From positions 1-64,000 of IMG/VR virus record IMGVR_UViG_3300042540_001822: a stretch of 64,000 bases of DNA; one strand, written 5' to 3'. Below, one piece after another: positions 26,337 to 50,338 of the stretch. The notes under the pieces were generated by a model. It was given only the letters and a program-made list of their open reading frames with translations, was not told the DNA's origin and searched no databases. The first letter of the stretch is position 1. Each line of letters begins with the position of its first letter. The position numbers and the translations under genes were made by a program.

Positions 26337-26430
26337 CACGCAAGACGGGATTCGAACCAAACCTTAGTATATCCAGTCGTATCTCCTGAGTTGGCCGCAT
26401 CAGGCGCATTACCAATTATGCTACTTACGT
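26337..26430 (-). ncRNA. isolated tRNA-like element with a 10-nt anticodon loop
   Basis: ACGTAAG/CTTGCGT acceptor, GCAT/ATGC D stem, CCTGA/TCAGG stem with loop TGCGGCCAAC, GGTTCGAATCC in a weak T stem. Confidence 0.6.
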
Positions 26431-26526
26431 ATACTTATTTTAATCCATTGGAGATTAATCTACTTAATGAGAAATTACATTATATTCTTGGTGTATGGGT
26501 GAAGAAAAACTGGACAAATAAACGAG

Positions 26527-26736
26527 TTAGTGATAATTCATAGGTAAACAATCACAAGATGGTATATCATAAAATTTCTCACCAGTTTCTATATCTTCCA
26601 GTGTGTAATATTTTGTTCCTATTTTCCAAGGAGCATATGTTTTTAAAATTTTATGAACTTTTCCTCTATACTTAATCAATGAACTATCACTAACATCAGA
26701 TACATTCAATTCTGAGTTTTCGTTTTCTGATTTCAT
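26527..26736 (-). CDS. cassette-derived small protein
   Basis: Stop lies in GTTA at 26526; leader …LNVSDVSDS crosses the right cassette end. Confidence 0.65.
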   Translation of the reverse strand: MKSENENSELNVSDVSDSSLIKYRGKVHKILKTYAPWKIGTKYYTLEDIETGEKFYDIPSCDCLPMNYH

Positions 26737-26871
26737 TTTATTCTATGGCTTTATGGTTTGGTGTTTGTTTTTACAAATATACAAATAAGTTTCGGGATCT
26801 CCAAATCTTACTTACACAAATACATCATATTCCTGGTGTATAAGTGAAAGAAAACTGGACAAATAAACGAG

Positions 26872-27090
26872 TTATACAACATTTATAAAATCCTCTATCC
26901 GTTGATTAACTCGTTTTATTTTTTCGTGATTTTCGTCTTGATGGTAAATCAATTCTCTTCTACAATATTCTTCGTAATTATGACCACGTTCCGCAACCAT
27001 CCATTTTTCTTTCTTTTCAAGTCTTTCTGTGAGAATTGATTTGATTTGTTTTAAATCACTCAAACTCATTGTTTTAATATTAAGTTCCAT
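26872..27090 (-). CDS. cassette-borne small helical protein
   Basis: Lies within the 10-bp inverted ends 26871/27109. Confidence 0.65.
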   Translation of the reverse strand: MELNIKTMSLSDLKQIKSILTERLEKKEKWMVAERGHNYEEYCRRELIYHQDENHEKIKRVNQRIEDFINVV

Positions 27091-27102
27091 AAAATAAACG
27101 TT

Positions 27103-27196
27103 GTATAACAAGGTATATACGAAATACCCTATTAAGGTTTATACTAAATTTTAAAGTTTGTTGTTAGGGTACTTCGTATATACCCAACCGTTATGT
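27103..27196 (+). mobile_element. attC-like site a
   Basis: TAAC-AA-[20-bp stem with one A.C mismatch]-CAACC-GTTA. Confidence 0.75.
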
Positions 27197-27197
27197 T

Positions 27198-27425
27198 TCA
27201 TTTTAGACGAGCATACCATTTCAATCTATCATCATTACCAATTTCAACTAATTCAAATTTAACTTTACAGTTTTCTAATATTTTCCAAGGATGAAAATTA
27301 AAACTCAACGGGTCTATTGGTAATTCACCATTTCTATTACCTGTTAAATTTGAGTTATCGCATTTCACAACCCAATAAGGTGTTGTGTTGAAATTGGTTG
27401 ATTTAATTAATATTCCTATTTCCAT
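27198..27425 (-). CDS. cassette-associated hypothetical protein
   Basis: Ends next to GTT 27190. Confidence 0.6.
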   Translation of the reverse strand: MEIGILIKSTNFNTTPYWVVKCDNSNLTGNRNGELPIDPLSFNFHPWKILENCKVKFELVEIGNDDRLKWYARLK

Positions 27426-27468
27426 ATTTATTTAAGTTTAAAACGACATTTATCTGTAACCGTTATGT

Positions 27469-27690
27469 TCAAGTTTTTGAAACAGGACTAACCTCCACAA
27501 TTTCAATTTGGGAAGTTTTATTCAACAGTACCCTATTAGAATATTTAGAAATAATAAAATCTCTAATATCATCAACTGTTGAATTTTCGTCAATTCCATC
27601 TTTCTTCCAAAAAGTCATAGTGTAATTTTGATTATTTCTAAATCTATCACCACTTTTAACAGATACGTTTTTTAATTTAACTGATACCAT
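27469..27690 (-). CDS. cassette-associated hypothetical protein
   Basis: Ends next to GTT 27462. Confidence 0.6.
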   Translation of the reverse strand: MVSVKLKNVSVKSGDRFRNNQNYTMTFWKKDGIDENSTVDDIRDFIISKYSNRVLLNKTSQIEIVEVSPVSKT

Positions 27691-27736
27691 ATTTTTTTAA
27701 TTTATAAAACAATAATTTAACTAAATAAAACAAAAA

Positions 27737-27970
27737 TTATGAGTTTTTCAGTTTTCCCCATCTTTTGTTAAATTCTTCATCTGTTTTAAGTTTTTCCAAA
27801 AATTCATCCTCTGAATAGTTTGAAGTTGTTGTTGTCTTAAATGGTAATTCAACCGGTAATTCTCTCACAACTTCCCATTTTCTTTGTTCTTCAGGATTCA
27901 TTTTTTCAAGTTCATCCATATATTGTCTCCATAATGGATTTTCATCTTCTGTATTTAATTTCCAACTCAT
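27737..27970 (-). CDS. hypothetical protein ending in NS*
   Basis: Carries the shared AACTCATAATTTTTG tail. Confidence 0.6.
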   Translation of the reverse strand: MSWKLNTEDENPLWRQYMDELEKMNPEEQRKWEVVRELPVELPFKTTTTSNYSEDEFLEKLKTDEEFNKRWGKLKNS

Positions 27971-28017
27971 AATTTTTTGTTTTTTATATTAATTTGTATA
28001 ATTTTTGTTTTACATAC

Positions 28018-28071
28018 TTATAACAAATGATAGACAACATTAAAACGATTGTTTATCATCGAACGTTATAA
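28018..28071 (+). mobile_element. attC-like site b (54 nt, CATTAAAACGA loop family)
   Basis: ATGATAGACAA/TTGTTTATCAT stem between TAAC and GTTA. Confidence 0.75.
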
Positions 28072-28075
28072 GAAA

Positions 28076-28246
28076 TTATTTTTTAATCACTATTCCATTA
28101 TCTTTACAAAATTTTTGATCAACAATCCATTTGTTTTTATCCCAATCCCAAACATACATTCCATATATTCTACCAGGATAAGTCATAGGTGGAATTTTTG
28201 TAAAAACCCCTTCTAATATTATTTTTTCTTCTTTCTTTTTCCCCAT
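28076..28246 (-). CDS. 56-aa cassette ORF (below the ORF-track cut-off)
   Basis: MGKKKEEKIILEG...VIKK*; inside cassette 28065-28276. Confidence 0.6.
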   Translation of the reverse strand: MGKKKEEKIILEGVFTKIPPMTYPGRIYGMYVWDWDKNKWIVDQKFCKDNGIVIKK

Positions 28247-28316
28247 TTGTGTATATTAAAAATAACTACTTATAACAAAGTGTAAATAAACACGCAAAAC
28301 ATTATGTGCAAGCCTA

Positions 28317-28490
28317 CTATTCCGCTTCGATATGATTATATATTAATTTCATTACCCAAGCATTTTCAAACTCATAGAACCCACAAGTCGAGCAAGCATC
28401 TTCTTCGGTATCATAGTAGATTATTTTACCTTCTTTATTTTTCATAAAGTCCATATTTCTAAGGTCTATGATTACATATTGGTCTTTCAT
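28317..28490 (-). CDS. 57-aa cassette ORF (below the ORF-track cut-off)
   Basis: MKDQYVIIDL...HIEAE*; inside degenerate cassette 28301-28538. Confidence 0.6.
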   Translation of the reverse strand: MKDQYVIIDLRNMDFMKNKEGKIIYYDTEEDACSTCGFYEFENAWVMKLIYNHIEAE

Positions 28491-28637
28491 TTCGTTTTAA
28501 AATTAAATTTAATGATGATAAGCCGCCCAGCACATAAGAGCGGTTTGGCAAGGCTTGTTGGTTGGTTTTATGGGTTTAGGGTGTGGGGTCGGGGAAGGAA
28601 AACTGGACAAATAAACGATTTATGTGTAATAAAAAAA

Positions 28638-28922
28638 TTATTCAGCACTCACAAAATGACTTTTCTTCAATTCAGAAAAAGTTTCAAATCTTTTTTGTTT
28701 ATCGTCAATTGTTAAAAGATAGTAATACTGTTCACCATATTGAAAATGTGCCTTCTTTTCAATTTTAGCATTACCCTTAGTAAAGTTTCCTACTTTTTTA
28801 TGTTCATCTCCCGAAAATATAAAGTCCATATTAATTGTGTATTGATACTCGTCATTAAACCAGTAATACTTGTCAACATTTTTATCATCAAAAAAAGATT
28901 TGAATTTCTTAATTATACCCAT
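28638..28922 (-). CDS. cassette-borne protein with CTS-like N-terminus
   Basis: MGIIKKFKSFF; cassette 28619-28958. Confidence 0.6.
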   Translation of the reverse strand: MGIIKKFKSFFDDKNVDKYYWFNDEYQYTINMDFIFSGDEHKKVGNFTKGNAKIEKKAHFQYGEQYYYLLTIDDKQKRFETFSELKKSHFVSAE

Positions 28923-28963
28923 TTTGTTGTTTTAATTTATTTTTTACATACACATAACAAGGT

Positions 28964-29164
28964 TTAGGTGTATATGTAAAATAAATCCAAGTTTCTATGT
29001 TTCACTCTACAAAACTTACCATCTTTAGTTTCAATTAAGAAACTAATATCACCTCTATCTAAGTTTATCTTTTCTCGAATGTATCCATCAACTAATGATG
29101 TTCCGAGATTGAAACTGATATGTGTCCCAACTTCTAATTCTTTGTTCATTTTACAATCAATCAT
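28964..29164 (-). CDS. hypothetical protein
   Basis: Start set at MIDCKMNKEL. Confidence 0.5.
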   Translation of the reverse strand: MIDCKMNKELEVGTHISFNLGTSLVDGYIREKINLDRGDISFLIETKDGKFCRVKHRNLDLFYIYT

Positions 29165-29214
29165 GTGTATAAATTTTAAGTTACTAAATACAACAACAAA
29201 TATAAGAAATAAAA

Positions 29215-29559
29215 TTAAACGCCAAACCAAGAACCATTGTGTAGATAACACTGATTTATTACCTCACCAGTTTCAGTGTTTTTAATATCGTATCTTGGTT
29301 TATCCTCTGTCAGATAAATTTTCCTATCAAAATAACCTTTAGTGATTATTGAAATATTTTTAATAATATCATATCCCATGTTTTTGTATTCTGAAAAGGT
29401 AATATATCTTTCTTTGCCTATATTACCATCATAAACTAACATCAACGGTTCTTTTGAGTCAACCCATCCTGAAAATTTATCATGTTTGTTGATGATATTA
29501 AAAACATCCATTCCTTTTGTGGTTACTTTTTCACCTAAATTAAATTCTTTCATATTCAT
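29215..29559 (-). CDS. hypothetical protein
   Basis: Start set at MNMKEF; the upstream extension overlaps attC c. Confidence 0.55.
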   Translation of the reverse strand: MNMKEFNLGEKVTTKGMDVFNIINKHDKFSGWVDSKEPLMLVYDGNIGKERYITFSEYKNMGYDIIKNISIITKGYFDRKIYLTEDKPRYDIKNTETGEVINQCYLHNGSWFGV

Positions 29560-29581
29560 ATTTTTGTTTAATTTTACATTC

Positions 29582-29635
29582 ATACAACAAATGATAAAAA
29601 ACATTAAAACGAACACATATTCTTAACCGTTATAA
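29582..29635 (+). mobile_element. attC-like site c (chimeric arms)
   Basis: Left arm resembles b/d, right arm resembles i; joined at the shared loop. Confidence 0.6.
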
Positions 29636-29641
29636 GTAATA

Positions 29642-29761
29642 TTATTTTTGTTCAAGTAATTTAATTAATTCATCATATTCTTGTTGATTTTCTTCTTTTA
29701 TTACTTTTAACATATAACCCATCGGTGTTAGGTATTCTTTCTTTTCTTTCTTCTTTTTCAT
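29642..29761 (-). CDS. 39-aa cassette ORF
   Basis: MKKKKEKKEYLTPMGY...LLEQK*; lies between GTT 29629 and TAAC 29789. Confidence 0.45.
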   Translation of the reverse strand: MKKKKEKKEYLTPMGYMLKVIKEENQQEYDELIKLLEQK

Positions 29762-29794
29762 AATTTTAAATTTTTTAACTAAGTATAACAAAAA

Positions 29795-30277
29795 TTATTG
29801 TTCATCACTCTCAATAACTATATCTTCTGAATCTAAATTTTCAGAAACCAATTCATCAACAACTTGCTCTATTGTCTTTTTATATTCTTCCATCTGTTCT
29901 TTTTCATTAATGTAGTCAATAATCTCATTTAATTTATTTCTAAATTGCGAAAGTTTTTGACCAATTGTTTCTTCTTGAAAATTTGATTCTCTTGATGTTT
30001 TTAATCTTTCTATTTTTTTCATATTGTATAATTTTTGATACTCATCTACAATTAGTTTTATGTTGTATGTGTCTTTGCTAAACTCTGATTTATGAATATA
30101 CCAAGTCAAAAAATCAACTAACAATCCACTAACAACAGGTTCATTCAATTTAATAACCTCGCTTTCTAATATAATTTCAGCAATAGTTGTCATAGCAGCA
30201 TTTTCCTCTTTATTCCACATATCCATTCCATATCCTGTCTTTTCTATGTATTTCTCTATCAAGTAATCTGATGTCAT
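29795..30277 (-). CDS. hypothetical protein
   Basis: 5' leader GTTAGGTTTAGTTAAATTATTG is shared with gene 32456. Confidence 0.6.
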   Translation of the reverse strand: MTSDYLIEKYIEKTGYGMDMWNKEENAAMTTIAEIILESEVIKLNEPVVSGLLVDFLTWYIHKSEFSKDTYNIKLIVDEYQKLYNMKKIERLKTSRESNFQEETIGQKLSQFRNKLNEIIDYINEKEQMEEYKKTIEQVVDELVSENLDSEDIVIESDEQ

Positions 30278-30315
30278 AATTCTTTTTTTAATTTGTAAAA
30301 CAATAATTTAACTAA

Positions 30316-30369
30316 ACCTAACAAATGATAAACAACATTAAAACGATTGTTTATCATCGGACGTTAGCG
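30316..30369 (+). mobile_element. attC-like site d (54 nt)
   Basis: Perfect 11-bp stem ATGATAAACAA/TTGTTTATCAT. Confidence 0.8.
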
Positions 30370-30648
30370 ACCATTAAAAGACCGCCACAATTCGACAAAC
30401 TTTTCACGTTTCATTTGCCTTAATTCTCTATTATGCGCATATTTTCTTTCGTGGTAAATTTCTATTTCACTACCACCTGTGAAGTAAACTGAATACGTTA
30501 ACCAGGAACTATCCCCGCCAACTTGACCTACTCTTTCAATTTTTCGTAAATCAATGGTGTCGCCCCCAATATCAACTAAAGGATTAACGGCTTCTAACAC
30601 ATTATTTGCATCAGTGGGGGTGTCGTTTTTCAAATTATCTTTCTGCAT
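30364..30648 (-). CDS. cassette-derived protein
   Basis: Stop in GTTA; leader …TDANNVLEAV. Confidence 0.65.
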   Translation of the reverse strand: MQKDNLKNDTPTDANNVLEAVNPLVDIGGDTIDLRKIERVGQVGGDSSWLTYSVYFTGGSEIEIYHERKYAHNRELRQMKREKFVELWRSFNGR

Positions 30649-30721
30649 GTTATTAAAGTTTTGTGCTTCAATTTAAGAAAAAACTACATATATCTGTGAT
30701 CGTTAGCAGTAATACTACCAA

Positions 30722-31018
30722 TCAGTGCTGATTTTTCAAATAATTTGTTGTACATTCTATCCAACACTTTGCTTTATCCGTATTATCCATAAAATCAACT
30801 TTATGAACAAATAAACAAGTAAATTTTTCAGACCATCCCATTGGTAGCCAAAGAGTATTCATGTATCCTTCCAATAATTCCTTATTAGATTTTTCAAATT
30901 TAGTTTCATCTCTTTGTGATAGCCAATCCTCACACATTCTAACTATCGGTTGGAATTCTGGTATTCCAATCACATTTACTATTTTATTCAATATTTTTTC
31001 AGATTCAAATTGATTCAT
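30722..31018 (-). CDS. hypothetical protein
   Basis: Start set at MNQFES; the track extension is an attC half-site. Confidence 0.6.
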   Translation of the reverse strand: MNQFESEKILNKIVNVIGIPEFQPIVRMCEDWLSQRDETKFEKSNKELLEGYMNTLWLPMGWSEKFTCLFVHKVDFMDNTDKAKCWIECTTNYLKNQH

Positions 31019-31061
31019 ATTTTTAAGTTTTGTGGTAAGGTACTTCGCATATGCCCAGCCG

Positions 31062-31280
31062 TTATGCAAAAGGTAGCGGACAACCGTTCGGTATTGTATC
31101 AGCGTCTACAATTTCAACATCCAGTTTTTCACACCAGTGTTTACCCCATCTGTATTCATGATTACCATCATCGTGAATATGATGAGGACATTGCCAACAA
31201 CACTCAACAACCACTACCCTTCGCATAACATTATGTTGCTGCAATGTGGGCTGACCGTTTTCATTTTTACTGTTGTTCAT
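31062..31280 (-). CDS. cassette-derived Cys-rich small protein
   Basis: CCWQCPH...WC...CPLP; cassette 31061-31229. Confidence 0.7.
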   Translation of the reverse strand: MNNSKNENGQPTLQQHNVMRRVVVVECCWQCPHHIHDDGNHEYRWGKHWCEKLDVEIVDADTIPNGCPLPFA

Positions 31281-31321
31281 CTATGTTTCTTGTTTTGTTC
31301 TTTTTACTCAAATTCGTAAAA

Positions 31322-31504
31322 TTACTGTTTTGTGTTTTCTAATTTATTCTCTAATTCCTCCACTTTGTTTCTCCAATATCTCGTAACCGTATATTGTGCT
31401 GAACGAATATAATCGTATGGATGAACATATCCACCCCATCTTAATTTATATTCTTCTTCTTCTAGAGTTTTCTTAGCCTCTTTCAATTCTTCCTCTATGT
31501 TCAT
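31322..31504 (-). CDS. hypothetical coiled-coil protein
   Basis: ORF track. Confidence 0.55.
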   Translation of the reverse strand: MNIEEELKEAKKTLEEEEYKLRWGGYVHPYDYIRSAQYTVTRYWRNKVEELENKLENTKQ

Positions 31505-31511
31505 ATATTCT

Positions 31512-31787
31512 TTAATTTGTATTTTTTAATTTATTCAAAGTAATCACGTTATTTAGTTGCACTTCTTTTAATGTGATTTTTCGTGTATCTTTAAAGTTTT
31601 CGATTACTTCATCCAAATTTTTACTCATGTGTTTATCAAAATCACTTTCAGTTGGGTGGTCTAGATTAGCCTCAAACTCTACCTCAAAACCGTGTTCACT
31701 TAAAAATTTCTTTAATAAGTAAGTTAAACGAGATTTACCAGATGCAACTTGCCCTGATACTGTAATAATTAAATCTTTCTTTTCCAT
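31512..31787 (-). CDS. small P-loop-like protein fragment
   Basis: ITVSGQVASGKS; promoter at 31819. Confidence 0.6.
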   Translation of the reverse strand: MEKKDLIITVSGQVASGKSRLTYLLKKFLSEHGFEVEFEANLDHPTESDFDKHMSKNLDEVIENFKDTRKITLKEVQLNNVITLNKLKNTN

Positions 31788-31928
31788 TTTATTTTTTTAT
31801 AGTTTAGTGTTTGTTTTACAAATATACGAATAAGTTTTCAGATTTCCAAATTTTATCCACACAAATACATCATATTTCTGGTGTATAAGTGAAGAAAAAC
31901 TGGACAAATAAACGAGTTATAAACAATT

Positions 31929-32162
31929 TTAAGAAACATGTTCCCTTGTATTGAGTTCCGTTTTAATTAAACTCAAAAAATCTTTATGTTCATTGTATTT
32001 TTGCTCCATATCTGATTGTGTTGCTCGTGCTTCCCATATCATTTCACCACATCCACAACTGCACCAATACCCGACACCGTAAAATCTTCTACGTTCTGCT
32101 TTGTAAAATCGTAATAGATTTTTTGTATTTAATTTTCTTAATTCTTCGATTGACTTTCCCAT
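31929..32162 (-). CDS. cassette-borne small protein
   Basis: CSCGCG; cassette 31916-32181. Confidence 0.65.
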   Translation of the reverse strand: MGKSIEELRKLNTKNLLRFYKAERRRFYGVGYWCSCGCGEMIWEARATQSDMEQKYNEHKDFLSLIKTELNTREHVS

Positions 32163-32174
32163 AATAAAAACTGT

Positions 32175-32270
32175 TTATAACAAGGTGTATATGTAATTTT
32201 TTTTTACAAAGATATGAATAATTTTTGAAATTTCCAAATAAAAAACTACATATACACCCAACCGTTAGGT
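32175..32270 (+). mobile_element. attC-like site e with a promoter in its loop
   Basis: 17-bp stem (one A.C mismatch); loop holds TTTG-N20-TATCTTTG on the minus strand. Confidence 0.75.
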
Positions 32271-32456
32271 TCAATCATTAATTTGTTTTGATTTTTTTAA
32301 TTCTTCTTCTAACTCTTTTAATTGAATTTCCCAATGTTTCTTAAATTTAATCCAAAATTCATTTCCATTAGGTCCTTCCACCTCAATCTTTTCTCCACAA
32401 AATTTTATTGATGTTTTACAATGTTCAATTTTATCCTCTGTTGTTAAGTAATTCAT
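32271..32456 (-). CDS. cassette-borne small protein
   Basis: Cassette 32264-32504. Confidence 0.6.
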   Translation of the reverse strand: MNYLTTEDKIEHCKTSIKFCGEKIEVEGPNGNEFWIKFKKHWEIQLKELEEELKKSKQIND

Positions 32457-32546
32457 ATTTCTATTTTTTTTAATTTGTAAAACAATAATTTAACTAAACC
32501 TAACATATAAACGAAAACTCGTTTATTTGTCCACTCTTCTAATTAT

Positions 32547-32969
32547 TTAATAACCAAAATCTCCATACAAATCTTGAAAAGATAAATCATTCATAGCACC
32601 TAAATCATTCCAATGTTCAAGATTATTATTCTTTTTTGATTTGTGTTTTGGTGTTGCCCTTTCACTTCTCGATGGCGGTAATGAATTATAAGCATCATCC
32701 CAATATTTTTGCCAAAAATTCAAATCTTCTTTTGATAAGTCTCTTAATTTGATGGTACATTTACTCAAACTTGTTAGAGTTTCTTTTTCTTGTATAGTTG
32801 CTTCGTTTTCATGTAGTTTCCCAACTAAATTTTGAAGCCACCATCCTTTAATTTGATAGTAAGGATGTTTTAGTCCTCTGTTGTCTAATACAGATTTTGG
32901 TATCCAACCATTACCTTCTAGTTTATATGCTTTCTCTGTTTCTTGAATAATATTTAATTTTACTAACAT
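32547..32969 (-). CDS. hypothetical protein
   Basis: ETEKAY...WIPKS N-terminal beta motif. Confidence 0.65.
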   Translation of the reverse strand: MLVKLNIIQETEKAYKLEGNGWIPKSVLDNRGLKHPYYQIKGWWLQNLVGKLHENEATIQEKETLTSLSKCTIKLRDLSKEDLNFWQKYWDDAYNSLPPSRSERATPKHKSKKNNNLEHWNDLGAMNDLSFQDLYGDFGY

Positions 32970-33069
32970 AGTTTAATGTTTAAATTTATTAATTGCCTCT
33001 CTAAAATTTTGTATTTCAATTTAAGTTTAGTTAAACACTACGTTTATACCCAACCGTTAGCGGTAATTG

Positions 33070-33261
33070 TTAAAGTTCTTCTTTTTCCATTTTACCACAC
33101 CTTACACAATATCGTGTTTGGATTGTGCCAACATAAGGATATTGTTGCCCTTGTTTAACTAATAACATATCTATATTTTCTTGTTTCCATTTAGTCCACT
33201 TGTGTCTCCAAAAACAACTACCGTTAACAACGGTTTGGCTAGATTCAGGGGTTGCTTCCAT
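33070..33261 (-). CDS. cassette-derived small Zn-binding protein
   Basis: CFWRHKW...CVRCG; leader SSQTVVNGS; cassette 33056-33228. Confidence 0.7.
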   Translation of the reverse strand: MEATPESSQTVVNGSCFWRHKWTKWKQENIDMLLVKQGQQYPYVGTIQTRYCVRCGKMEKEEL

Positions 33262-33390
33262 AGGTTTAAAGTTTGTTTTTACAAATATACGAATAAGTTT
33301 TCAGATTTCCAAATTTTATCCACACAAATACATCATATTTCTAGTGTATAAGTGAAGAAAAACTGGACAAATAAACGAGTTATCGGAAAT

Positions 33391-33693
33391 TCATTTTTCT
33401 TCCGACTCCTGCTCCGAAGAAGGTTGTTGCTTTTCAAATTCTTCTCTGATTTTAGTTAATCTTGAAAACTCTGCTACCCAAGCATCTAATGTCATTCCAT
33501 TTACTGAAATGTTTTCAAGCCTGTCCCTACCATCACCATCCCAATCAATTACCACTTCTCTACTACTACCCATTTGCCCAAGACTTCGTAGTTTTGAAAA
33601 AAATTCTAATAGTGGCTTTACTGCATCATCTGAGCAGGTAAATGAAATGACATTTTGAAAAGCAATGTTTGGTGTTTTAAATTTTTGTTCCAT
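33391..33693 (-). CDS. cassette-borne protein
   Basis: MGSSR...DWDGDG; cassette 33379-33738. Confidence 0.7.
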   Translation of the reverse strand: MEQKFKTPNIAFQNVISFTCSDDAVKPLLEFFSKLRSLGQMGSSREVVIDWDGDGRDRLENISVNGMTLDAWVAEFSRLTKIREEFEKQQPSSEQESEEK

Positions 33694-33731
33694 TTTAAAT
33701 TAAGTTTATTACCCACGAAAAATGAACTATC

Positions 33732-33827
33732 CGATAACACGGGTTTGGCAAAATGCCACCAAATAGTTTGTGCCAAGATTGAAAGTTCGTGCAAGGTGGC
33801 ACTTCGCCAAGCCCGAAGCCGTTATGT
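33732..33827 (+). mobile_element. attC-like site f
   Basis: CGGGTTTGGCAAAATGCCACC/GGTGGCACTTCGCCAAGCCCG stem, 18 of 21 Watson-Crick pairs. Confidence 0.8.
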
Positions 33828-33834
33828 GTAATTG

Positions 33835-34152
33835 CTACATTCCGTACATTTGAAGAACTATATTCTTTGAACGACATAATTCAGCCCAAGCTTCTTGACA
33901 GTAATTTCTACCGTGTAATGCGTTATTAAATTCGTGACACAATTCAGTTACCAATGATTCAATGTCTTGTGTTAAATCAATTTGTGTTTCGTATTGGTAT
34001 CTTCCACGCAATATTCCATCCTCGTATAAGTGCAATTCACTTTTCGCTCTTGTTTCTAAATCTACATAGAATTGGTCTTTTTCGCTATTGTAGTGCATTG
34101 ATGTAGAAATTCCTTTCTTTGCCAACGCTTTCATTATGTCTTGTATTTCCAT
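33835..34152 (-). CDS. hypothetical protein
   Basis: Promoter at 34179; ends next to GTT 33821. Confidence 0.65.
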   Translation of the reverse strand: MEIQDIMKALAKKGISTSMHYNSEKDQFYVDLETRAKSELHLYEDGILRGRYQYETQIDLTQDIESLVTELCHEFNNALHGRNYCQEAWAELCRSKNIVLQMYGM

Positions 34153-34287
34153 TTTATTTTTGTTTACTGTTTGTTTTACAAATATACAAATAAATTTTTA
34201 GATTTACAAATTTTACCCCCCACAAATACATCATATTCCTGGTGTATAAGTGAAGGGAAACTGGACAAATAAACGAGTTATGTGCCA

Positions 34288-34488
34288 TTAAGAACCATAA
34301 CCGTTTTTAACCATTTTTTGACGAATTTGTTCAGCTATTTCTAACTTTATCTTTTCGTCTTGGTCATATCTTCCAACAAGGAAATTAAATGATTTTAACA
34401 TTGCAGTCCTTAACTCAAGTTGGTCATCATTTGGATATATTTTCCACATATATTCAACAAATTCGGCTTCGGTTTTACATAATTTCAT
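34288..34488 (-). CDS. cassette-borne small protein
   Basis: Cassette 34277-34513. Confidence 0.65.
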   Translation of the reverse strand: MKLCKTEAEFVEYMWKIYPNDDQLELRTAMLKSFNFLVGRYDQDEKIKLEIAEQIRQKMVKNGYGS

Positions 34489-34506
34489 GCTTCAAAAATT
34501 AACGGC

Positions 34507-34597
34507 ACATAACAAGGTATATGTGAAATACCTTATAAAGTTTCTACTAATTTTTAAGTTCGTCTTTAGGTACTTCACATATACCCAACTGTTATAT
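34507..34597 (+). mobile_element. attC-like site g
   Basis: TATATGTGAAATACCT/AGGTACTTCACATATA stem (one A.C mismatch). Confidence 0.8.
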
Positions 34598-34921
34598 TCA
34601 ATTTTCAATTTGTTTTGGAATTTCTACCCATTTATTATCAACCAATTTATATCGTGTTTCATAATCAAATGAAGTCTCGGAAGCATCATTATTAAAATAT
34701 AAAATATTTTCCATATCCCAACTACTTCTATAAAAGGTGTGTTCGTTATTTTCACAATGAATTACAGTGTTTCCGTCCATAACTATCATCGCATTTATAT
34801 GTGTTGAAAATAACTTACCCCCACATATCGGACATTTATGTTCATATTCATTTATATCACACCAATAATCACCCATTCTTTTTTGTTGGTATCTAAACCA
34901 TTCTAATTTTTCTTTTCCCAT
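34598..34921 (-). CDS. Zn-binding hypothetical protein
   Basis: CPICGG. Confidence 0.6.
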   Translation of the reverse strand: MGKEKLEWFRYQQKRMGDYWCDINEYEHKCPICGGKLFSTHINAMIVMDGNTVIHCENNEHTFYRSSWDMENILYFNNDASETSFDYETRYKLVDNKWVEIPKQIEN

Positions 34922-35008
34922 AATTTTATATTTTACTTACACAAATATATCATATTCTTGGTGTATGTGTGAAGGAAACCTGGACAAATAAACGAGTTAG
35001 CAGAAATA

Positions 35009-35278
35009 CTACTGAGCGTTACTAACAGGAATTGCATCTGCATCTAAATTATGGTCGTGTCTTTGCAGTTCAGAAACTAAATAGTTATCTCTAACAGACT
35101 TGTGAAATGGCTCAACATAACCTTCTTTTGCAAAATACCATTCGCCTTGATAGTTAAACTCAAAGCCACTATCTCGCATACAAATTGACATAGTTTCACC
35201 ACTTGCAGTTTTTAAAGTTAAACCGCTAAAAACTTCTTCTAATTGGATACCTAAATCCTCTGTTACTGTTACTTTCAT
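35009..35278 (-). CDS. cassette-borne protein
   Basis: Cassette 34996-35333. Confidence 0.65.
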   Translation of the reverse strand: MKVTVTEDLGIQLEEVFSGLTLKTASGETMSICMRDSGFEFNYQGEWYFAKEGYVEPFHKSVRDNYLVSELQRHDHNLDADAIPVSNAQ

Positions 35279-35326
35279 TTTGTTATTTATTTAAGTTAAA
35301 AATTCGTTTTAATTACACCGTACTTC

Positions 35327-35412
35327 TGCTAACAGCACATAAGCAAAAGCCCAAATCCAACCGCATAATGCCACCGCTATTTGTGCCTTCGCTTATCTGC
35401 AAACCGTTATAA
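35327..35412 (+). mobile_element. attC-like site h
   Basis: GCACATAAGCAAAAGC/GCCTTCGCTTATCTGC stem between TAAC and GTTA. Confidence 0.7.
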
Positions 35413-35427
35413 GTAATGAAACAAAAA

Positions 35428-35619
35428 TTATGAGTTTTCATTTTTCTTACTCCCATCTTCATTCCACTTCCTAAGAAATTCTTGATTTTCAGGTTTTGAA
35501 AGTTCTTCTTTCATCGCATCATCAAATTTCTTTTGCATTTCAAGATTTTGTTCCTCTGTCAGTGTATTCAAATCCTGAAAATCTTCTTTTGTTAATTTAC
35601 TTTTCATATTGTAAATCAT
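35428..35619 (-). CDS. hypothetical protein ending in NS*
   Basis: Shared 3' tail. Confidence 0.6.
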   Translation of the reverse strand: MIYNMKSKLTKEDFQDLNTLTEEQNLEMQKKFDDAMKEELSKPENQEFLRKWNEDGSKKNENS

Positions 35620-35696
35620 ATTGTAAAATTTTTGTTTTAAGTTTTGTGGTAAGGTACTTCACATATACCCAACCGTTATATTCAATATCAAAAATT

Positions 35697-35993
35697 TTAT
35701 GAGTTTTTATATTTTTCAACCCACTCATCATAAGATAGTCTATTTTCTACCAAATATCTTTTAGCAACCTTAGCGTTCCATTCTTTCATTTCTTCAAAAG
35801 TAACTCCTTTTATATACTTACTACAATTCAAATCAAATTTGTAATCTAACCCACCTTCCCACATCACTTCATAAAACACACTATCTTTATCGTGTCCAAT
35901 CGTTCCATTTATCTTATCAGACTGCATATCAACAAAAGCATCAGTTACTCTTTTCATATATGCTTCGTATTCTTTTTGAAATTCTTTTTTCAT
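35697..35993 (-). CDS. cassette-borne protein ending in NS*
   Basis: Cassette 35675-36023. Confidence 0.65.
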   Translation of the reverse strand: MKKEFQKEYEAYMKRVTDAFVDMQSDKINGTIGHDKDSVFYEVMWEGGLDYKFDLNCSKYIKGVTFEEMKEWNAKVAKRYLVENRLSYDEWVEKYKNS

Positions 35994-36035
35994 TTGTATA
36001 AAATTTTTGATACTAAATATAACAAAGAATATGTG

Positions 36036-36617
36036 TCATTGCCTTTCGTTCCAAACTGATTCTGCTTCATCAATAGTGTCAGACCACCAATCAAGTGAAT
36101 GTCCTTTTTGTTTACAATTCACCCTGTAATATTCTGTCATACTATCTCCAAAAGTCTTGTTTTCAATTTCCGTATCCGAACCACAAAAAGGACAAGGCAA
36201 CGCACACACAACAGCAGGTATATTCAATTGTGGGTTCTGTGGTTTATCCGAATTTTGTGTTTCTCTTGATGTGATTTCATTTAGTTCTTTGTATAATCCA
36301 TTATGCCAAGTTTTCATTTTATCTAAACAATCACTAATAACATCATCAATGTTTGTTTTATAAATTGAAACATCTTGTAATTCACCTTCTTTATATTCTT
36401 TTGTTGAAGGTAACATTTCAACAATATTATAAAACAAATCAATTGGTTTATTTTCCCAATTAAAAAAATTACCATCAAACTCACCATAACTTATTCTAAA
36501 TCCGCCACTAAGCAATCCGTGTGCGTATAATTTATAATTAACACCATCTACCATTAACATTTTTGGTAAATCTTTTTCACATCTTAACACGTGGTCTTTT
36601 TCTTCTTGTAATTCCAT
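36036..36617 (-). CDS. fusion of an unknown domain and a Lar-like (restriction alleviation) Zn finger, joined by an attC-derived linker
   Basis: PQLNIPAVVCALPCPFCG...WN; attC left-arm remnant at 36205-36240. Confidence 0.65.
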   Translation of the reverse strand: MELQEEKDHVLRCEKDLPKMLMVDGVNYKLYAHGLLSGGFRISYGEFDGNFFNWENKPIDLFYNIVEMLPSTKEYKEGELQDVSIYKTNIDDVISDCLDKMKTWHNGLYKELNEITSRETQNSDKPQNPQLNIPAVVCALPCPFCGSDTEIENKTFGDSMTEYYRVNCKQKGHSLDWWSDTIDEAESVWNERQ

Positions 36618-36618
36618 T

Positions 36619-36849
36619 TTATTTAGTTTTCAACATTTCTTTATAGGCATTACCTGTGCTAAATTGTTGTTCAAATGTTGGATTTGGATAATGTTCATTT
36701 TGAATCCAATTATCGTGATGTTCAAATGTTCTCCAACCATTATCACGTAATTCTTTTACCATATTCATTAACCCACTTCCAACTTTCATATCAGAAGGAA
36801 TTTCAATACCACCATCAGGTGTTACTTTTACAATAGTTTCTAATTTCAT
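36619..36849 (-). CDS. hypothetical protein
   Basis: ORF track. Confidence 0.6.
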   Translation of the reverse strand: MKLETIVKVTPDGGIEIPSDMKVGSGLMNMVKELRDNGWRTFEHHDNWIQNEHYPNPTFEQQFSTGNAYKEMLKTK

Positions 36850-36910
36850 AATTTATTTTTTTATAAATGAAGGAAAACTGGACAAATAAACGAGTTATAT
36901 TCAATAAAAA

Positions 36911-37090
36911 TTAATTTATGAGTTTATCTACATAATAGTTATCACCACCATAACCGTATTTAATTCTTGCTTGTTCAGCTTCTTCTTTTGTGTTATATGG
37001 TGCTAATATCACACCATTTTTCTCGTTTTGATGTGCTGGTTCTTTTTCATAAACCGCATAATACTCTTTTTTAAGTGCTTCGTATTTCAT
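36911..37090 (-). CDS. 59-aa cassette ORF (below the ORF-track cut-off)
   Basis: MKYEALKKEYY...DKLIN*; cassette 36894-37120. Confidence 0.6.
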   Translation of the reverse strand: MKYEALKKEYYAVYEKEPAHQNEKNGVILAPYNTKEEAEQARIKYGYGGDNYYVDKLIN

Positions 37091-37113
37091 ATGTATAAAT
37101 TAATTTTTACTAA

Positions 37114-37167
37114 ATATAACAAAGAATATGTGTCATTAAAACGAACACATATTCTCAATCGTTAGCG
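37114..37167 (+). mobile_element. attC-like site i (54 nt)
   Basis: Perfect GAATATGTGT/ACACATATTC stem with loop CATTAAAACGA. Confidence 0.8.
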
Positions 37168-37395
37168 GTAATTTTTACGAACATATCGTTCTACATATTT
37201 CCCGTAATCTTCCATCATTTCCCACCAAGTATCATTACTAATTAAGTTATCGGACAAATAATCTAATTTTGAACGACCATAAACTTTTACCACCCAACCA
37301 ATCGGGTCTAAAAAACTACCGCTAACACCAGATAAAAGCATTTTATTACTGCTAATATCTAACTTCTCTGCTTGTTTTTTACTTTTGTTTTTCAT
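37162..37395 (-). CDS. cassette-derived protein
   Basis: Leader …MLLSGVSGS; cassette 37161-37326. Confidence 0.65.
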   Translation of the reverse strand: MKNKSKKQAEKLDISSNKMLLSGVSGSFLDPIGWVVKVYGRSKLDYLSDNLISNDTWWEMMEDYGKYVERYVRKNYR

Positions 37396-37421
37396 ATTAA
37401 ATTATTGTTTATCATCAGTCG

Positions 37422-37667
37422 TTATAAAACATTTCCGAGAACGTTTCTTAGTTCGTCCTTATCTACGAATGAATTAAGAACAAAAATTTCTTTTCCTGTG
37501 TGATTTTTTTGAACAACATTATCGTTTATCCAAATATGTGCATTATAAATCTCAATTTCAGGTATTATTGTATATCTTGTAGGATATTTACCATCAGTCG
37601 TTTCGGTAATCAATATATTATGTTCACCAAAGAAATTTTTGTAAATCAGTTTTAATTTTGTTTTCAT
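37422..37667 (-). CDS. cassette-borne protein
   Basis: Stop in GTTA at 37421. Confidence 0.6.
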   Translation of the reverse strand: MKTKLKLIYKNFFGEHNILITETTDGKYPTRYTIIPEIEIYNAHIWINDNVVQKNHTGKEIFVLNSFVDKDELRNVLGNVL

Positions 37668-37736
37668 TTTATTTAGTTTTTAACATTTCGGTGTATGGAT
37701 GAAGAAAAACTGGACAAATAAACGAGTTAGCAACAA

Positions 37737-37946
37737 TTAGTGCTGACCATACCTCAAATGAATGTTATCATAATCAGTGTCATAATAAGCACCGTTTTCT
37801 TGCTTATGTTTCTTTATACATTGGTATAAATATATTTCGGTTAATCCAACCAAAGAACAATCACATTTATCCCAAACATTATACAGTTGTTTAATTTCGT
37901 CATCATTCAAATCTAATAAACTTTCTATTGTGTTCTTTTCATTCAT
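37737..37946 (-). CDS. hypothetical protein
   Basis: Follows attI-like junction 37726. Confidence 0.55.
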   Translation of the reverse strand: MNEKNTIESLLDLNDDEIKQLYNVWDKCDCSLVGLTEIYLYQCIKKHKQENGAYYDTDYDNIHLRYGQH

Positions 37947-38190
37947 AAATCAACGTTTTATATCAAGGTATAAATTCAATTAAATATTTTTACTATCTCT
38001 CTAACCTTATCAATCAAAAAATTAGTTTCTTCAATATGATGTTGTTCCAATCTTTTATACCTTTCTTCCCAAGTCAATGTATCATCATCCTTGTATTTTT
38101 TGATTTTAATCCACTTGTATGTTTCAAGTATTTCTTTCTTTTCTAATTCTTCCATAATAAAATATTTAATTAGATTTATACTAAGGAATA

Positions 38191-38409
38191 TTATTTTTGT
38201 TTTGAGAATGTTGATATAACACTATCAATAACTTCTTCTTTACTACCAATATCCCACCAATCTGGATTTTGTTTTAGTTTATACTCTGGATTATCGTTAT
38301 GATAAGTTTCTACCAACCCATCAACTAATCCATTCCACGAAATATTGTTCTGTTCTAAAACTGAAACAATCTCCGCATATTTAATCATTTTTTCTACTAT
38401 TTCTTCCAT
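38191..38409 (-). CDS. hypothetical protein
   Basis: ORF track. Confidence 0.55.
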   Translation of the reverse strand: MEEIVEKMIKYAEIVSVLEQNNISWNGLVDGLVETYHNDNPEYKLKQNPDWWDIGSKEEVIDSVISTFSKQK

Positions 38410-38549
38410 AATTTATATTTTTTAATAAGTTTCATATAACAAGGTGTATGGGAAATTTTTTATCAAATATACATCATATTCCTGATGTATGGATGAAGGA
38501 AACCTGGACAAATAAACGAGTTATAGCCAATACTACCGAAGTACTTCGA

Positions 38550-38978
38550 TTAAGCATTTAGTGGCTCATCAAAGATTACATTCCAACTATCTAATGGTTG
38601 CCAACCGCCACCCATAGTCATTACTTCTAAATCTGATGATGGTATATTTTTGAACGTAATATATTCGTCACCTTTATTATTTACTATTCTTGGTGATAGT
38701 TGAAAATCATCAGTCAATTTTGTTCTCAAAACACACATTTTACTAATCCCACCTTTTGATTTAGCATAGTATTTAGCATAATCTAAATCGTTTGTAAAAC
38801 TAATTGATGGTTGTTCTTCACCAGTTCTATTTGGTTTCATATATCCATCGTACTGTATATTCATTGCTTGTCCTTTACCTGTTCCATGATAAATATAATC
38901 ATCTTGTTTTATATCTTCATTTACAAATTGATTGAATGATTTAACCTCATCAATCATATCTCGTATTTCTTTACTCAT
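38550..38978 (-). CDS. ADP-ribosyltransferase-like protein with CTS-like N-terminus
   Basis: YIYHGT...PSISFTNDLDYAKYYA; N-terminus …KSFNQFVNE. Confidence 0.55.
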   Translation of the reverse strand: MSKEIRDMIDEVKSFNQFVNEDIKQDDYIYHGTGKGQAMNIQYDGYMKPNRTGEEQPSISFTNDLDYAKYYAKSKGGISKMCVLRTKLTDDFQLSPRIVNNKGDEYITFKNIPSSDLEVMTMGGGWQPLDSWNVIFDEPLNA

Positions 38979-39091
38979 TTTGTTTATGTTTATATAAAAA
39001 TATTTCTATGTTTCTACAAAAATACATCATATTCCTGGTGTATAAGTGAAAGAAAACTGGACAAATAAACGAGTTATAGATAATAAAATAT

Positions 39092-39340
39092 CTATTTAAT
39101 CTTAGTTCCTTTTGGAACAAATTTCTTCAAATCTTTTTTCAATTGTTTATCTACTGATTTAGAGTATTCTTCATCATTTTCAATCATCCAAGTATGAAGT
39201 TGAAGAAATTCTTTTTCTGATAGAGTTTCACCATCTAATTTACGTTGAATAAGTTTAGATATTTTACTATCTATAAAATCAGATATATTCAAGTTTTCTT
39301 GATGTTCGTTGAAACTTTGTATGTGTTTATTACCTTTCAT
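39092..39340 (-). CDS. hypothetical protein with CTS-like N-terminus
   Basis: KHIQSFNE; AATATATA at 39360-39367. Confidence 0.6.
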   Translation of the reverse strand: MKGNKHIQSFNEHQENLNISDFIDSKISKLIQRKLDGETLSEKEFLQLHTWMIENDEEYSKSVDKQLKKDLKKFVPKGTKIK

Positions 39341-40284: not shown

Positions 40285-40416
40285 AGTTTTATCTTTATAT
40301 ATTAAATCTCAGAACTAAATGTTTTGAAGAAACTTTATGGGCAATGCTAATAATCAGATGTCTTAACAAAATTATACATTTAACATTCTACTTCATTTAA
40401 ATCCGATATAACTCGA

Positions 40417-40671
40417 TTTACTCTGCCCTACTTGACTTCATCTTAGACTTCACCATAGACTCTGCCCTAGACTTCACCATAGACTCTGCCCTAGACTTCA
40501 CCATAGACTCTGCCCTAGACTTCACCATAGACTTCACCATAGACTTCACCATAGACTCTGCCCTAGACTCTGCCCTAGACTTCACCATAGACTCTGCCCT
40601 AGACTTCACCATAGACTCTGCCCTAGACTTCACCATAGACTCTGCCCTAGACTTCACCATAGACTCTGCCC
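40417..40671. repeat. tandem array of two 12-bp units (TAGACTTCACCA x10, TAGACTCTGCCC x9)
   Basis: 19 perfect units at 40444-40671 plus degenerate leading copies. Confidence 0.95.
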
Positions 40672-41121
40672 ATTTTACATAACCCCTTTGTGCAAGCGCC
40701 CCCCGACCCAGTGCTTATTGTATATACGTGAGGGCCCCGGGTTTTTCCATGCTAAGGGTCCCCTAAATTGGTCCATTTAGACCCCTTCTAAGTCCGAGGG
40801 TCCCCCATTTATAACCGGGCCCTGTATAAGGGGCCTTTTACCCCCTAAAAAAGGACCCTGTTTTTACCCCCCTCCATGGACCGGAGGGGACCTATTTTAG
40901 GGTCCATTTGGGTGCTTCGGATTTCCCGGAATTTAAGGCTTATTTATAGAATAGGGTCCCCGGGATGGATTTGGATCCTTGGTCCCCAGCCCTCCCCCAG
41001 CCCATGGCCATTCTTGGGCCCCAAAAAAACCCCCAAAAACACCCGTTGTTTAATCTGTTCATTACCTGGTTTTCCGATGGATTCTTAACCCCGTTTAACC
41101 TCACGCCTAACCTCGGTCCAC

Positions 41122-47791: not shown

Positions 47792-48151
47792 TTATTGATT
47801 TTTTAATAAGGGATTTCCTAATGCAATACTTCTAAGTGCTAACATTGCGTTATTATACTGTTTTGCAGTCATTGTATTTTCATAGTCTCGAAATAAATAC
47901 TTCAAAACATATTTACATCTTTCTTCCAGTAAATCCTTTTCTTTGTCTAAATATTGTTTAGATCTGTTGTCTTCAATTACACCATTTGAATTCTCAAAGT
48001 AAATTTCCTCACCTTTAGAATCATATTCCCACTTTTCCCAATATCCACCTGAAATCTCAAAGTAAACTAGATTACCATTCGTGTCTTTAATTGCCAAGGA
48101 AGGATTGGCCTTAAAATCCCATTTGATTAGTTGTCCTACTGTTTGTTCCAT
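47792..48151 (-). CDS. dispersed member of the 21-aa repeat family, fused to a different C-terminus
   Basis: QLIKWDFK...YFEISGGYWEKWEYDSKG. Confidence 0.7.
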   Translation of the reverse strand: MEQTVGQLIKWDFKANPSLAIKDTNGNLVYFEISGGYWEKWEYDSKGEEIYFENSNGVIEDNRSKQYLDKEKDLLEERCKYVLKYLFRDYENTMTAKQYNNAMLALRSIALGNPLLKNQ

Positions 48152-49521: not shown

Positions 49522-49619
49522 ATGTGGTTGGTTTATGTCGTAAAGATACGACATTTTTACTAAGAATAAAACCAAAACCCCGAAAAGTTTTTCCCCAATT
49601 TATGGGGCTAAGTAAATTG

Positions 49620-49693
49620 TGATTCCACTAGGACTCGAACCTAGGACCTACAAATTATGAGTTTGCAGCTCTAACCAACTGAGCTATGGAATC
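49620..49693 (-). tRNA. tRNA with CAT anticodon (elongator Met or Ile2)
   Basis: Canonical cloverleaf GATTCCA/TGGAATC, loop CTCATAA, TTCGAGT; CCA not encoded. Confidence 0.92.
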
Positions 49694-50000
49694 TTTGGGT
49701 AAATTCTGTTTACGGTTTGTAGGGGTTTGTAAACAAAATTATGGTGGGTTGTTTAATTCATTTTTTTGATTTCCTCTATTAACTGAATAAACATGGATTT
49801 TGTTATATGTTCTTGTTTAACCCACATATAAATTATGCCCATCCTTTCATGGTAATCTTTTTTAGTTTGTAATTTTTCAATGAGTTCCTTTATCATTTAA
49901 CTATTTGTTTTTTCTTCTTTTGACCCGCCCGCGTTCGACGTATGTTAGTAATATACTATGTTAAAAAGTAACACCTAGCCGTTGTCTGTTTCGGAACGTG

Positions 50001-50098: not shown

Positions 50099-50201
50099 AT
50101 TTGTTTAACGATACGGTATTACATTATTTTCAATACACCATAAGTAATACTCTCTGTTGTCAATGTAATAATCTTTCATTGTTTCTATTTTTAATTGTTA
50201 G

Positions 50202-50333: not shown

Positions 50334-50338
50334 GTGTT

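Follow-up and report, generated by a model that had tools for sequence, protein, structure and literature searches.

A hairpin-forming junction between two small genes of a large freshwater phage carries a complete Bacteroidota-type promoter motif in its loop. This junction, which we call site e, belongs to a widespread and apparently undescribed phage gene-cassette system that resembles an integron and that, in 10 of 25 related records, is accompanied by a single small Xer/IntI-like tyrosine recombinase. The window analyzed is a stretch of 64,000 nucleotides, the start of the 219,475-bp IMG/VR virus record IMGVR_UViG_3300042540_001822, which is linear and 88% complete by CheckV. The original prediction, made from the sequence alone, was that the variable loop of an attC site holds a host-type promoter pointing into ORF 32162, that the site is both recombination substrate and promoter, and that hairpin extrusion could switch the promoter off. 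The observation itself is confirmed, with every coordinate correct. The interpretation is partly supported, since the promoter motif, its orientation, its place in the loop of a real hairpin and the attC-like design of the junction held up, whereas a canonical attC in a bacterial integron was not supported and the switch-off idea has no evidence behind it.

Read on the minus strand from 32270 down to 32160, the sequence is ACCTAAC, GGTTG, GGTGTATATGTAGTTTTTT and A, then TTTG, 20 nt, TATCTTTG and T, then AAAAAAAAATTACATATACACC, TT, GTTATAAACAGTTTTTATT and ATG. The features of the site and its surroundings, all on the minus strand, are as follows.

32264-32270, minus strand: inverse-core-like box ACCTAAC (TAAC at 32267-32264), which ends the 3' inverted repeat of the upstream cassette; the inferred crossover lies between TAA and C, that is, between 32265 and 32264.
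32259-32263, minus strand: 5-nt unpaired spacer GGTTG, opposite the 2-nt spacer TT on the other side of the hairpin.
32240-32258, minus strand: 5' arm of the hairpin, GGTGTATATGTAGTTTTTT.
32235-32238, minus strand: -33 element TTTG, starting 1 nt after the 5' arm.
32215-32234, minus strand: 20-nt promoter spacer, GAAATTTCAAAAATTATTCA.
32207-32214, minus strand: -7 element TATCTTTG (consensus TAnnTTTG).
32184-32202, minus strand: 3' arm of the hairpin, AAAAAATTACATATACACC, with the predicted transcription start (about 32199-32203) in its A run.
32165-32183, minus strand: 2-nt spacer TT, then the core-like GTTA (32181-32178, within GTTATAA at 32181-32175) and the 5' inverted repeat of the cassette, GTTATAAACAGTTTTTA, which pairs with 31932-31916 with G:T at position 11.
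31929-32162, minus strand: cassette ORF of 77 aa with a Cys-rich motif and no Pfam or PHROG family, the gene into which the loop promoter points; homologues occur in three other phage contigs with different flanks.
31916-31932, minus strand: 3' inverted repeat of that cassette, TTAAAATTGTTTATAAC, ending in TAAC.
32271-32456, minus strand: upstream cassette ORF of 61 aa, bracketed by GTTAGGTTTAGT (32504-32493) and ATTGAACCTAAC (32275-32264).
31788-31928, minus strand: next junction, consisting of the type A box (TAAC TCGTT TATTTGTCCAG...), a small hairpin and the same promoter module (31850-31819); it stays linked to ORF 31787-31512 in the phage contigs L085, L131 and L146.
26526-39100, minus strand: array of about 45 small co-oriented ORFs separated by attC-like junctions of types A, B and C and GC-rich types; a second array lies at about 66.5-70.4 kb of the record, outside the window.

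As single-stranded DNA, the 113-nt stretch folds into a 19-bp stem around the promoter-like sequence, at -16.7 kcal/mol for the minus strand and -16.4 kcal/mol for the plus strand (z = -3.9 and -3.6). None of 200 shuffles folded as well. The bare promoter pattern TTTG-N18-22-TAnnTTTG is not convincing on its own, since it is only weakly enriched in the window, with 10 matches against 4.7 expected, and 3 of 100 shuffles reached 10. However, six of those ten matches, plus one more at 69.7 kb of the record, are near-identical copies of one 32-37-nt module. All seven are on the minus strand, are intergenic, have a 20-nt spacer and lie 20-45 nt upstream of an ORF start.

Across this genome and other IMG/VR contigs we found 21 distinct contexts of the module, with both boxes invariant or nearly so while several spacer positions vary. 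Among 14 module copies compared, the -33 element was conserved in 13-14; in the -7 element T25, A26, T27, T29, T30 and T31 were invariant and G32 was present in 12. About half of the copies sit just downstream of a conserved type A box followed by a small hairpin, and others have unrelated upstream sequence, so the module is an independent unit. Both boxes and the spacing match the Bacteroidota sigma-A consensus, -33 TTTG and -7 TAnnTTTG separated by 19-21 nt, as described for housekeeping promoters of Bacteroides and Flavobacterium (PMC2483708), and an A-rich leader precedes the start codon. Transcription from the motif was not measured here. The stretch is present nearly unchanged in about 19 freshwater or lake DNA metagenomes from 17 studies, no RNA run contains it, and the one run labelled RNA is probably DNA. 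The predicted start is inferred from the usual distance to the -7 box. The length of the A run in which it falls is polymorphic in metagenomes (at 32197).

In four contexts the module exactly fills the loop of a hairpin: site e, the contig L181 (position 116258 of record G007), and the contigs L156 and L152. The arms are either the same as in site e or changed on both sides (GGTGTATAAGAAGG with CTTTCTTATACACC in L156), and the four sites sit between different cassettes. We had first read the promoter-in-loop arrangement as a one-off recombinant between modules, but rejected this after finding the three further copies with compensated stems. The composite is therefore a conserved design and not an accident of this genome. 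In two other phages (L060, at 85567-85681 of record G008, and L138), the same upstream cassette end, ...AATGATTGAACCTAAC, is followed by an ordinary type B hairpin without a promoter. Site e is thus a type B element, the commonest hairpin, whose distal stem and loop were replaced by the promoter.

The record encodes a ribonucleotide reductase, a topoisomerase II large subunit, a gp46-like exonuclease and a helicase. The topoisomerase is closest to those of T4-like phages, at about 30% identity. GC content is 35.8%. Only 12% of ORFs of 150 aa or more have a Shine-Dalgarno-like motif upstream of the start, and their leaders are A-rich and G-poor, which is the pattern described for Bacteroidota (PMC6847099). 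"Host-type promoter" is therefore a reasonable label, although the host is inferred rather than known.

The small minus-strand ORFs of the two arrays are separated by short spacers. Our scan found at least nine elements, eight in the window and one or two in the second array, that share one architecture when read in the ORF direction: xTAAC, 5 nt (GNTYG), a stem of 9-20 bp, a loop, the stem again, 1-2 nt and GTTA. They have at least five unrelated stem sequences but the same 5/2 (or 5/1) asymmetry. Each ORF is in addition bracketed by its own inverted repeat of 12-26 nt that extends these cores. All 15 such pairs in this genome have a G in the 5' copy opposite a T in the 3' copy at position 11, whereas block shuffles gave a mean of 4.3 unconstrained hits. 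Across the phage loci examined there are 212 distinct pairs with this G:T, against 33 with a Watson-Crick pair there. The cassette genes are almost all ORFans, and one carries a Lar-like restriction-alleviation domain. A megablast search of the 14-kb array against 50,697 phage records returned one 73-nt hit. Rfam 15, searched at gathering thresholds over the whole window and at E<=1 over 26-40 kb, gave only tRNA-like hits and nothing on the repeats.

The type B hairpin is a conserved structured element. The 16-mer TAACGGTTGGGTATAT occurs in 112 IMG/VR contigs, of which at least 66 carry the complete element. In an alignment of 61 elements, TAAC, GTTA and the 5-nt spacer are invariant, 99.6% of cells form a pair, and 8 of 16 stem pairs show changes on both sides. 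The covariation score was 0.217, against 0.069 in shuffles (0 of 500 reached it) and 0.01-0.06 when the partner was slid. The first seven stem pairs were fixed by our selection of sequences and carry no information, but the covarying pairs were not constrained by that selection. Pair 36-88 of the alignment is G:U(T) in 59 of 61 elements, and another pair shows AU, GC and GU but never A.C. The strand that keeps pairing is therefore the ORF-coding strand. Site e has the same G:T at stem position 13.

No tyrosine recombinase, serine recombinase or Y1 transposase was found in this record, and five related records also have no tyrosine recombinase. A Pfam search of 20 larger ORFs of the window likewise found no recombinase or transposase. 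Of 25 larger records that carry a type B element, 10 encode exactly one tyrosine recombinase (PF00589) of 265-291 aa. These include three complete genomes with terminal repeats or at least 94% completeness. The other 15 lack it, three of them also at least 94% complete. The enzymes are orthologues with conserved catalytic residues R, K, HxxR, H and Y, and have the N-terminal PF13495 domain plus PF00589. Their best NCBIfam matches are XerA/integron integrase (179-197 bits, cut-off 220) and integron integrase TIGR02249 (157-164 bits, cut-off 265), both below their cut-offs, followed by XerD and XerC. The TIGR02249 match is split in two because the IntI-specific insertion is missing. The closest solved structures are archaeal XerA and Vibrio IntI4.

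In all seven records in which its position was examined, the recombinase gene lies on the same strand as the cassette ORFs, directly after the last cassette. In five of them (records G006, G007, G008, G017 and G026) the last TAAC lies 16-53 nt before the start codon. In G006, G007, G008 and G026 that TAAC is followed by a conserved attI-like sequence, TA(T/G)ATTATATA(T/G)GTAATAA, of which G013, G017 and G018 have variant forms. The sequence is absent from the genome that carries site e. The homologue of site e's upstream cassette lies in the recombinase-adjacent array of G008.

If the array is turned so that the recombinase gene points away from it, the layout is that of an integron: the 5' end of the recombinase gene, a conserved non-hairpin site, and cassettes whose sites read inverse core to core with the core (G|TT) distal and the bottom strand folding. 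We had first read the array in the ORF direction as canonical cassette orientation, and revised this on the breakpoint, wobble and recombinase-position data. Three observations favor the revised orientation, which means a crossover between TAA and C in the ORF direction. First, the attI-like sequence follows a TAAC. Second, cassettes shared between phages lose homology exactly after TAAC, while what follows is unrelated; examples are window 27462-27702 against record G005 and ORF 32162 against contig L034. A metagenome contig in one run (X8) also joins TAACGG to another hairpin body. Third, a junction body stays linked to the ORF downstream of it in other phages (window 31527-31931 against L085, L131 and L146). 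This argument rests partly on analogy, and breakpoints also occur near start codons and inside hairpin bodies (for example, a metagenome joint from 32202 to 34226), so ordinary recombination between modules happens as well. The metagenome joints come from assembled contigs of four runs aligned to 5,901 bases; many fell at the repeats, but with short sides and unknown intervening letters, and we use them only as weak support. In the revised reading, a cassette is a hairpin plus its downstream ORF (32264-31917 for site e).

Our preferred explanation, which we consider somewhat more likely than not, is that site e is a cassette junction of a phage-borne, integron-like gene-cassette array whose loop holds a working-type host promoter. 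The analysis shows the motif, the hairpin and their conservation, the cassette architecture, the covariation and strand asymmetry, the association of arrays with a Xer/IntI-like recombinase in relatives, and the absence of that gene here. That the motif fires, that the hairpins are recombination sites, and where the crossover lies are inferences; recombination was never observed directly. In this view, the recombinase would act on the sites in folded single-stranded form. The cassette ORFs, being inverted relative to those of classical integrons, could not be read from a platform promoter, so some cassettes would carry their own in the variable part of the site. In duplex DNA the host RNA polymerase would start at about 32200 and transcribe ORF 32162-31929. 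The arrays of this genome would behave like clusters of sites without an integrase. Against this explanation, the conserved G:T wobbles lie on the mRNA-sense strand, which fits an RNA structure equally well, the commonest junction (type A) has no stem, and canonical attC features such as extrahelical bases and a symmetric unpaired spacer are missing.

As for the proposed switch, transcripts started at the motif contain only the 3' arm, so they cannot form the hairpin. Extrusion of a cruciform with a 34-nt loop from duplex DNA is unfavorable, and was not tested here. The promoter would be unavailable only while the site is single-stranded and folded, which is trivial rather than regulatory. Read-through transcripts from upstream would contain the whole hairpin, so an RNA role in attenuation, processing or stability remains possible.

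A bolder version of this explanation is tentative, and we rate it slightly less likely than not. In it, large freshwater phages, probably of Bacteroidota, carry a distinct integron-like system with a minimal Xer/IntI-like recombinase lacking the IntI insertion, a conserved attI-like site next to its gene, and arrays of dozens of cassettes whose sites are long hairpins with TAAC/GTTA cores, a 5x2 spacer and fixed G:T wobbles at positions 11 and 13. The recombination site would lie upstream of its inverted gene and, in one conserved sub-family that includes site e, would house the gene's promoter in its loop, making it recombination substrate and promoter at once. Arrays without a recombinase, as here, would be serviced in trans during co-infection or be frozen.

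If the neighboring enzyme does recombine these sites, this would be an integron-type gene-capture platform native to virulent-looking large phages, with a simpler recombinase and a differently built site. That bears on how integron integrases evolved from Xer recombinases and on how phages assemble their hypervariable regions of early and anti-defence genes, such as the Lar-like cassette. A promoter built into the variable loop would explain how cassettes that face away from any platform promoter are expressed, and the 96 nt holding promoter plus recombination site form a compact natural part that can be tested directly. Even if the hairpins act only on RNA, the type B element and the ORF-bracketing repeats form a large conserved family of structured elements that is absent from Rfam.

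Literature searches for a phage system of this kind found, in the library searched, only the promoter-early stem-loops (PeSLs) of T4-type phages and phage-borne clusters of attC sites without integrase (CALINs; Qi et al. 2023, PMC9892861). The present system shares the logic of integrons and the regulatory content of PeSLs, but it fails defining features of canonical attC sites. With integrons, including CALINs, the present system shares an array of small genes of mostly unknown function, units bounded by AAC/GTT cores, sites conserved in structure rather than sequence, first bases of a unit complementary to the box at its other end, preferential folding of one strand, and a recombinase of the Xer/IntI clade whose 5' end abuts a conserved non-hairpin site at one end of the array and which is transcribed away from it. 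It differs in the 266-291-aa recombinase, which lacks the IntI-specific insertion and scores below the TIGR02249 and NF040815 cut-offs, in the asymmetric 5x2 spacer and fixed G:T wobbles in place of extrahelical bases, in R-box pairing extended to 12-26 bp, in cassette ORFs that point toward the recombinase, in promoters inside some sites, in its virulent-looking large phage carriers, and in the lack of a recombinase in this particular genome. Cassette-borne and attC-associated promoters are reported in gene-less cassettes of Vibrionaceae superintegrons (PMC11014356) and as outward promoters of group IIC-attC introns (PMC3001079). These too free downstream genes from dependence on the platform promoter, but they lie in cassette bodies or inserted introns, not within the attC loop itself.

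The strongest rival, which we consider possible but unlikely, is a PeSL-like regulatory cassette (Arbiol 2010, PMC2839356; Comeau 2014, PMC4122927). In this case, a host-type early promoter is combined with a stem-loop that acts on RNA as a terminator, attenuator, processing or stability signal for read-through transcripts. Cassette shuffling would arise from homologous or illegitimate recombination between the repeated intergenic modules, as in the hyperplastic regions of T4-type phages, and the recombinase in relatives would be unrelated or only incidental. PeSLs are defined as a host promoter plus a stem-loop in variable relative positions and mediate shuffling, and site e fits the combination of a host-consensus promoter with a stable stem-loop in one intergenic module. 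PeSLs are concentrated in hyperplastic regions upstream of ORFans, their boundaries, like those of the modules here, coincide with gene gain, loss and replacement between related phages, and the cassettes were proposed to be mobile via mini-circles. The T4-like replication genes, the run of ORFans, the wobble pairs kept on the mRNA-sense strand, the mosaic junctions with breakpoints inside bodies and near the ATG, and the lack of a recombinase in this genome and many relatives all agree with this reading. Whether the array counts as a hyperplastic region of a T4-type genome was left undecided by our data: the ORFan array is present, the replication genes are T4-like at about 30% identity, and a Pfam search for Gp23 that found nothing is uninformative because its control was silent. 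Termination or attenuation of upstream transcription was not assayed, but terminator-like sites are not enriched (4 found against 3.4 expected), nor are sigma-70 promoter consensus matches, and the hairpins lack a U tract directly behind the stem. PeSLs use sigma-70 boxes and G/C-rich stems, with no conserved AAC/GTT cores, ORF-bracketing repeats or associated site-specific recombinase, and of the five stem positions described relative to the promoter, none has a promoter filling the whole loop. An RNA terminator does not explain the invariant TAAC/GTTA cores around unrelated stems, the bracketing repeats with a fixed G:T at position 11, breakpoints exactly at TAAC with no homology beyond, or the constant placement of a tyrosine recombinase plus a conserved flanking sequence at the array end in 7 of 7 records examined.

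Very unlikely, in our judgement, are MITE-like elements comparable to the Correia elements of Neisseria, in which the hairpin bodies or ORF units would be small non-autonomous transposons with terminal inverted repeats, inserted at a TA within GTTAAC-like targets, some bringing outward promoters. Inverted repeats do bound both the bodies and the ORF units, TA is shared at both ends (GT-TA...TA-AC), and the units are scattered among unrelated phages. However, the repeats differ in sequence from unit to unit, so a transposase could not recognize them by sequence, no transposase family was found in the searches described above, and the arrays are ordered and end at a tyrosine recombinase.

Also very unlikely is a canonical attC site (a CALIN) acquired from, and serviced by, a bacterial host integron integrase, with a promoter that happens to lie in its loop. 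The box ACCTAAC fits RYYYAAC, the length is 96 nt, the ORFs are co-oriented, and the first bases of each cassette are complementary to its own inverse core. CALINs in virulent phages, including a Polaribacter phage, were recombined by IntI1 (PMC9892861). The core GTTATAA matches GTTRRRY only in GTTA, and across the 61 elements the positions beyond TAAC and GTTA vary, so the core boxes alone do not settle membership either way. The folding strand is similarly ambiguous, since the ORF-coding strand is the top strand relative to the ORFs but the bottom strand if the array is oriented from the recombinase gene. The attC covariance model (IntegronFinder) and HattCI were not applied. Clearer evidence against this reading comes from the stem, which is fully paired apart from the G:T at position 13 and has no extrahelical bases, from the 5-nt against 2-nt spacer, and from the recombinase, which is absent here and in relatives lacks the IntI insertion. 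The 20-nt type A box was found in only one of about 185,000 bacterial and archaeal species genomes, an Anabaena MAG contig without the rest of the element, probably by chance; the type B element was not sought in bacteria.

Finally, chance occurrence of a short AT-rich motif in an AT-rich loop, for which the roughly 2-fold enrichment of the generic pattern might speak, is already contradicted by the conservation data, because the module is conserved over 32-37 nt in 21 contexts, is always sense to and just upstream of an ORF, and recurs as a promoter-in-loop composite in four phages with compensatory stem changes.

In contigs of three lake metagenomes (X8, X11 and X15), the A9 run between the -7 box and the 3' arm of site e, the junction hairpin with the promoter motif in its loop, is 2 nt shorter (window 32197-32205). 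Contigs of X8 and X11 join the 3' arm of site e to a type A left half instead of the promoter loop. The type A box itself, TAAC TCGTT TATTTGTCCAG TTTTyCTTC, occurs about 18 times in this genome (window 26466-39084 and record 68548-70352), and exactly in 23 IMG/VR contigs (loci L009-L031). Some of those contigs have 52% GC, and there the box is followed by a C-rich tract and ATGAAAC instead of the hairpin and promoter. The type A box has no stem partner and its role is unexplained. At window 32457-32546, the type A 12-mer occurs in inverted orientation, as one arm of a small perfect hairpin (ACAAATAAACGA GTTT TCGTTTATATGT) that abuts the GTTA of the next cassette.

Several junction bodies encode the start of the downstream ORF, with a conserved peptide M-K-P-T-P-x-S-C-Q-T-x-V. 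The stem arm and the GTTA core (GCCAAACCNGTGTTA) are therefore coding sequence at these places, which are:
record 70352-70270, junction body encoding an ORF start
record 68548-68490, junction body encoding an ORF start
window 28637-28560, junction body encoding an ORF start
window 33261-33220, junction body encoding an ORF start
Among the cassette products, a 193-aa protein encoded at window 36036-36617 (minus strand) has a C-terminal Lar-like restriction-alleviation domain (Pfam E 9.5e-5, PHROG 599), which suggests that some cassettes are anti-defence genes. In the 310-kb complete phage G006, one of the related records, a SIR2-family gene lies immediately downstream of the phage recombinase (L170 2032-2727, corresponding to G006:188328-189023).

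A second family of conserved intergenic modules is present among the minus-strand genes at window 41569-63607. These modules consist of a GGGGTT...AACCCC-type hairpin followed by TTACATTTACC(T/C)TCATAAAAA just upstream of ORFs (repeat families D6, D13, D15 and D17), and it is possible that they represent a different promoter class of the phage combined with a terminator. A tandem array of a 12-nt unit (about 26 copies, 60-91% identity over the 108-nt reference window) lies just upstream of the cassette region, at window 40386-40697. Direct repeats of 200-300 nt at 60-86% identity (families D2, D3 and D5) at window 47940-48142 and 59438-60972 indicate a small paralogous gene family repeated in tandem.

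ARAGORN called only one tRNA (Met, window 49619-49693). The tRNA model of Rfam matched five further genes of 87-132 nt, far longer than a tRNA, within window 49619-54436 and at 26337-26430 (minus strand), and a repeat family shows nine copies of a tRNA 3' half between 49981 and 54366. This looks like a phage tRNA cluster with large insertions (introns or long arms). A relative (locus L033) has similar long tRNA-like genes flanking the homolog of ORF 32162, the gene into which the site e promoter motif points.

Near the start of the window (338-2276), two adjacent, overlapping ORFs each carry a VWA-like DUF2201 domain, and they are followed at 7.4-11 kb by a lysozyme, a GH16 glycosidase, an FkbM methyltransferase and a DUF932 protein.
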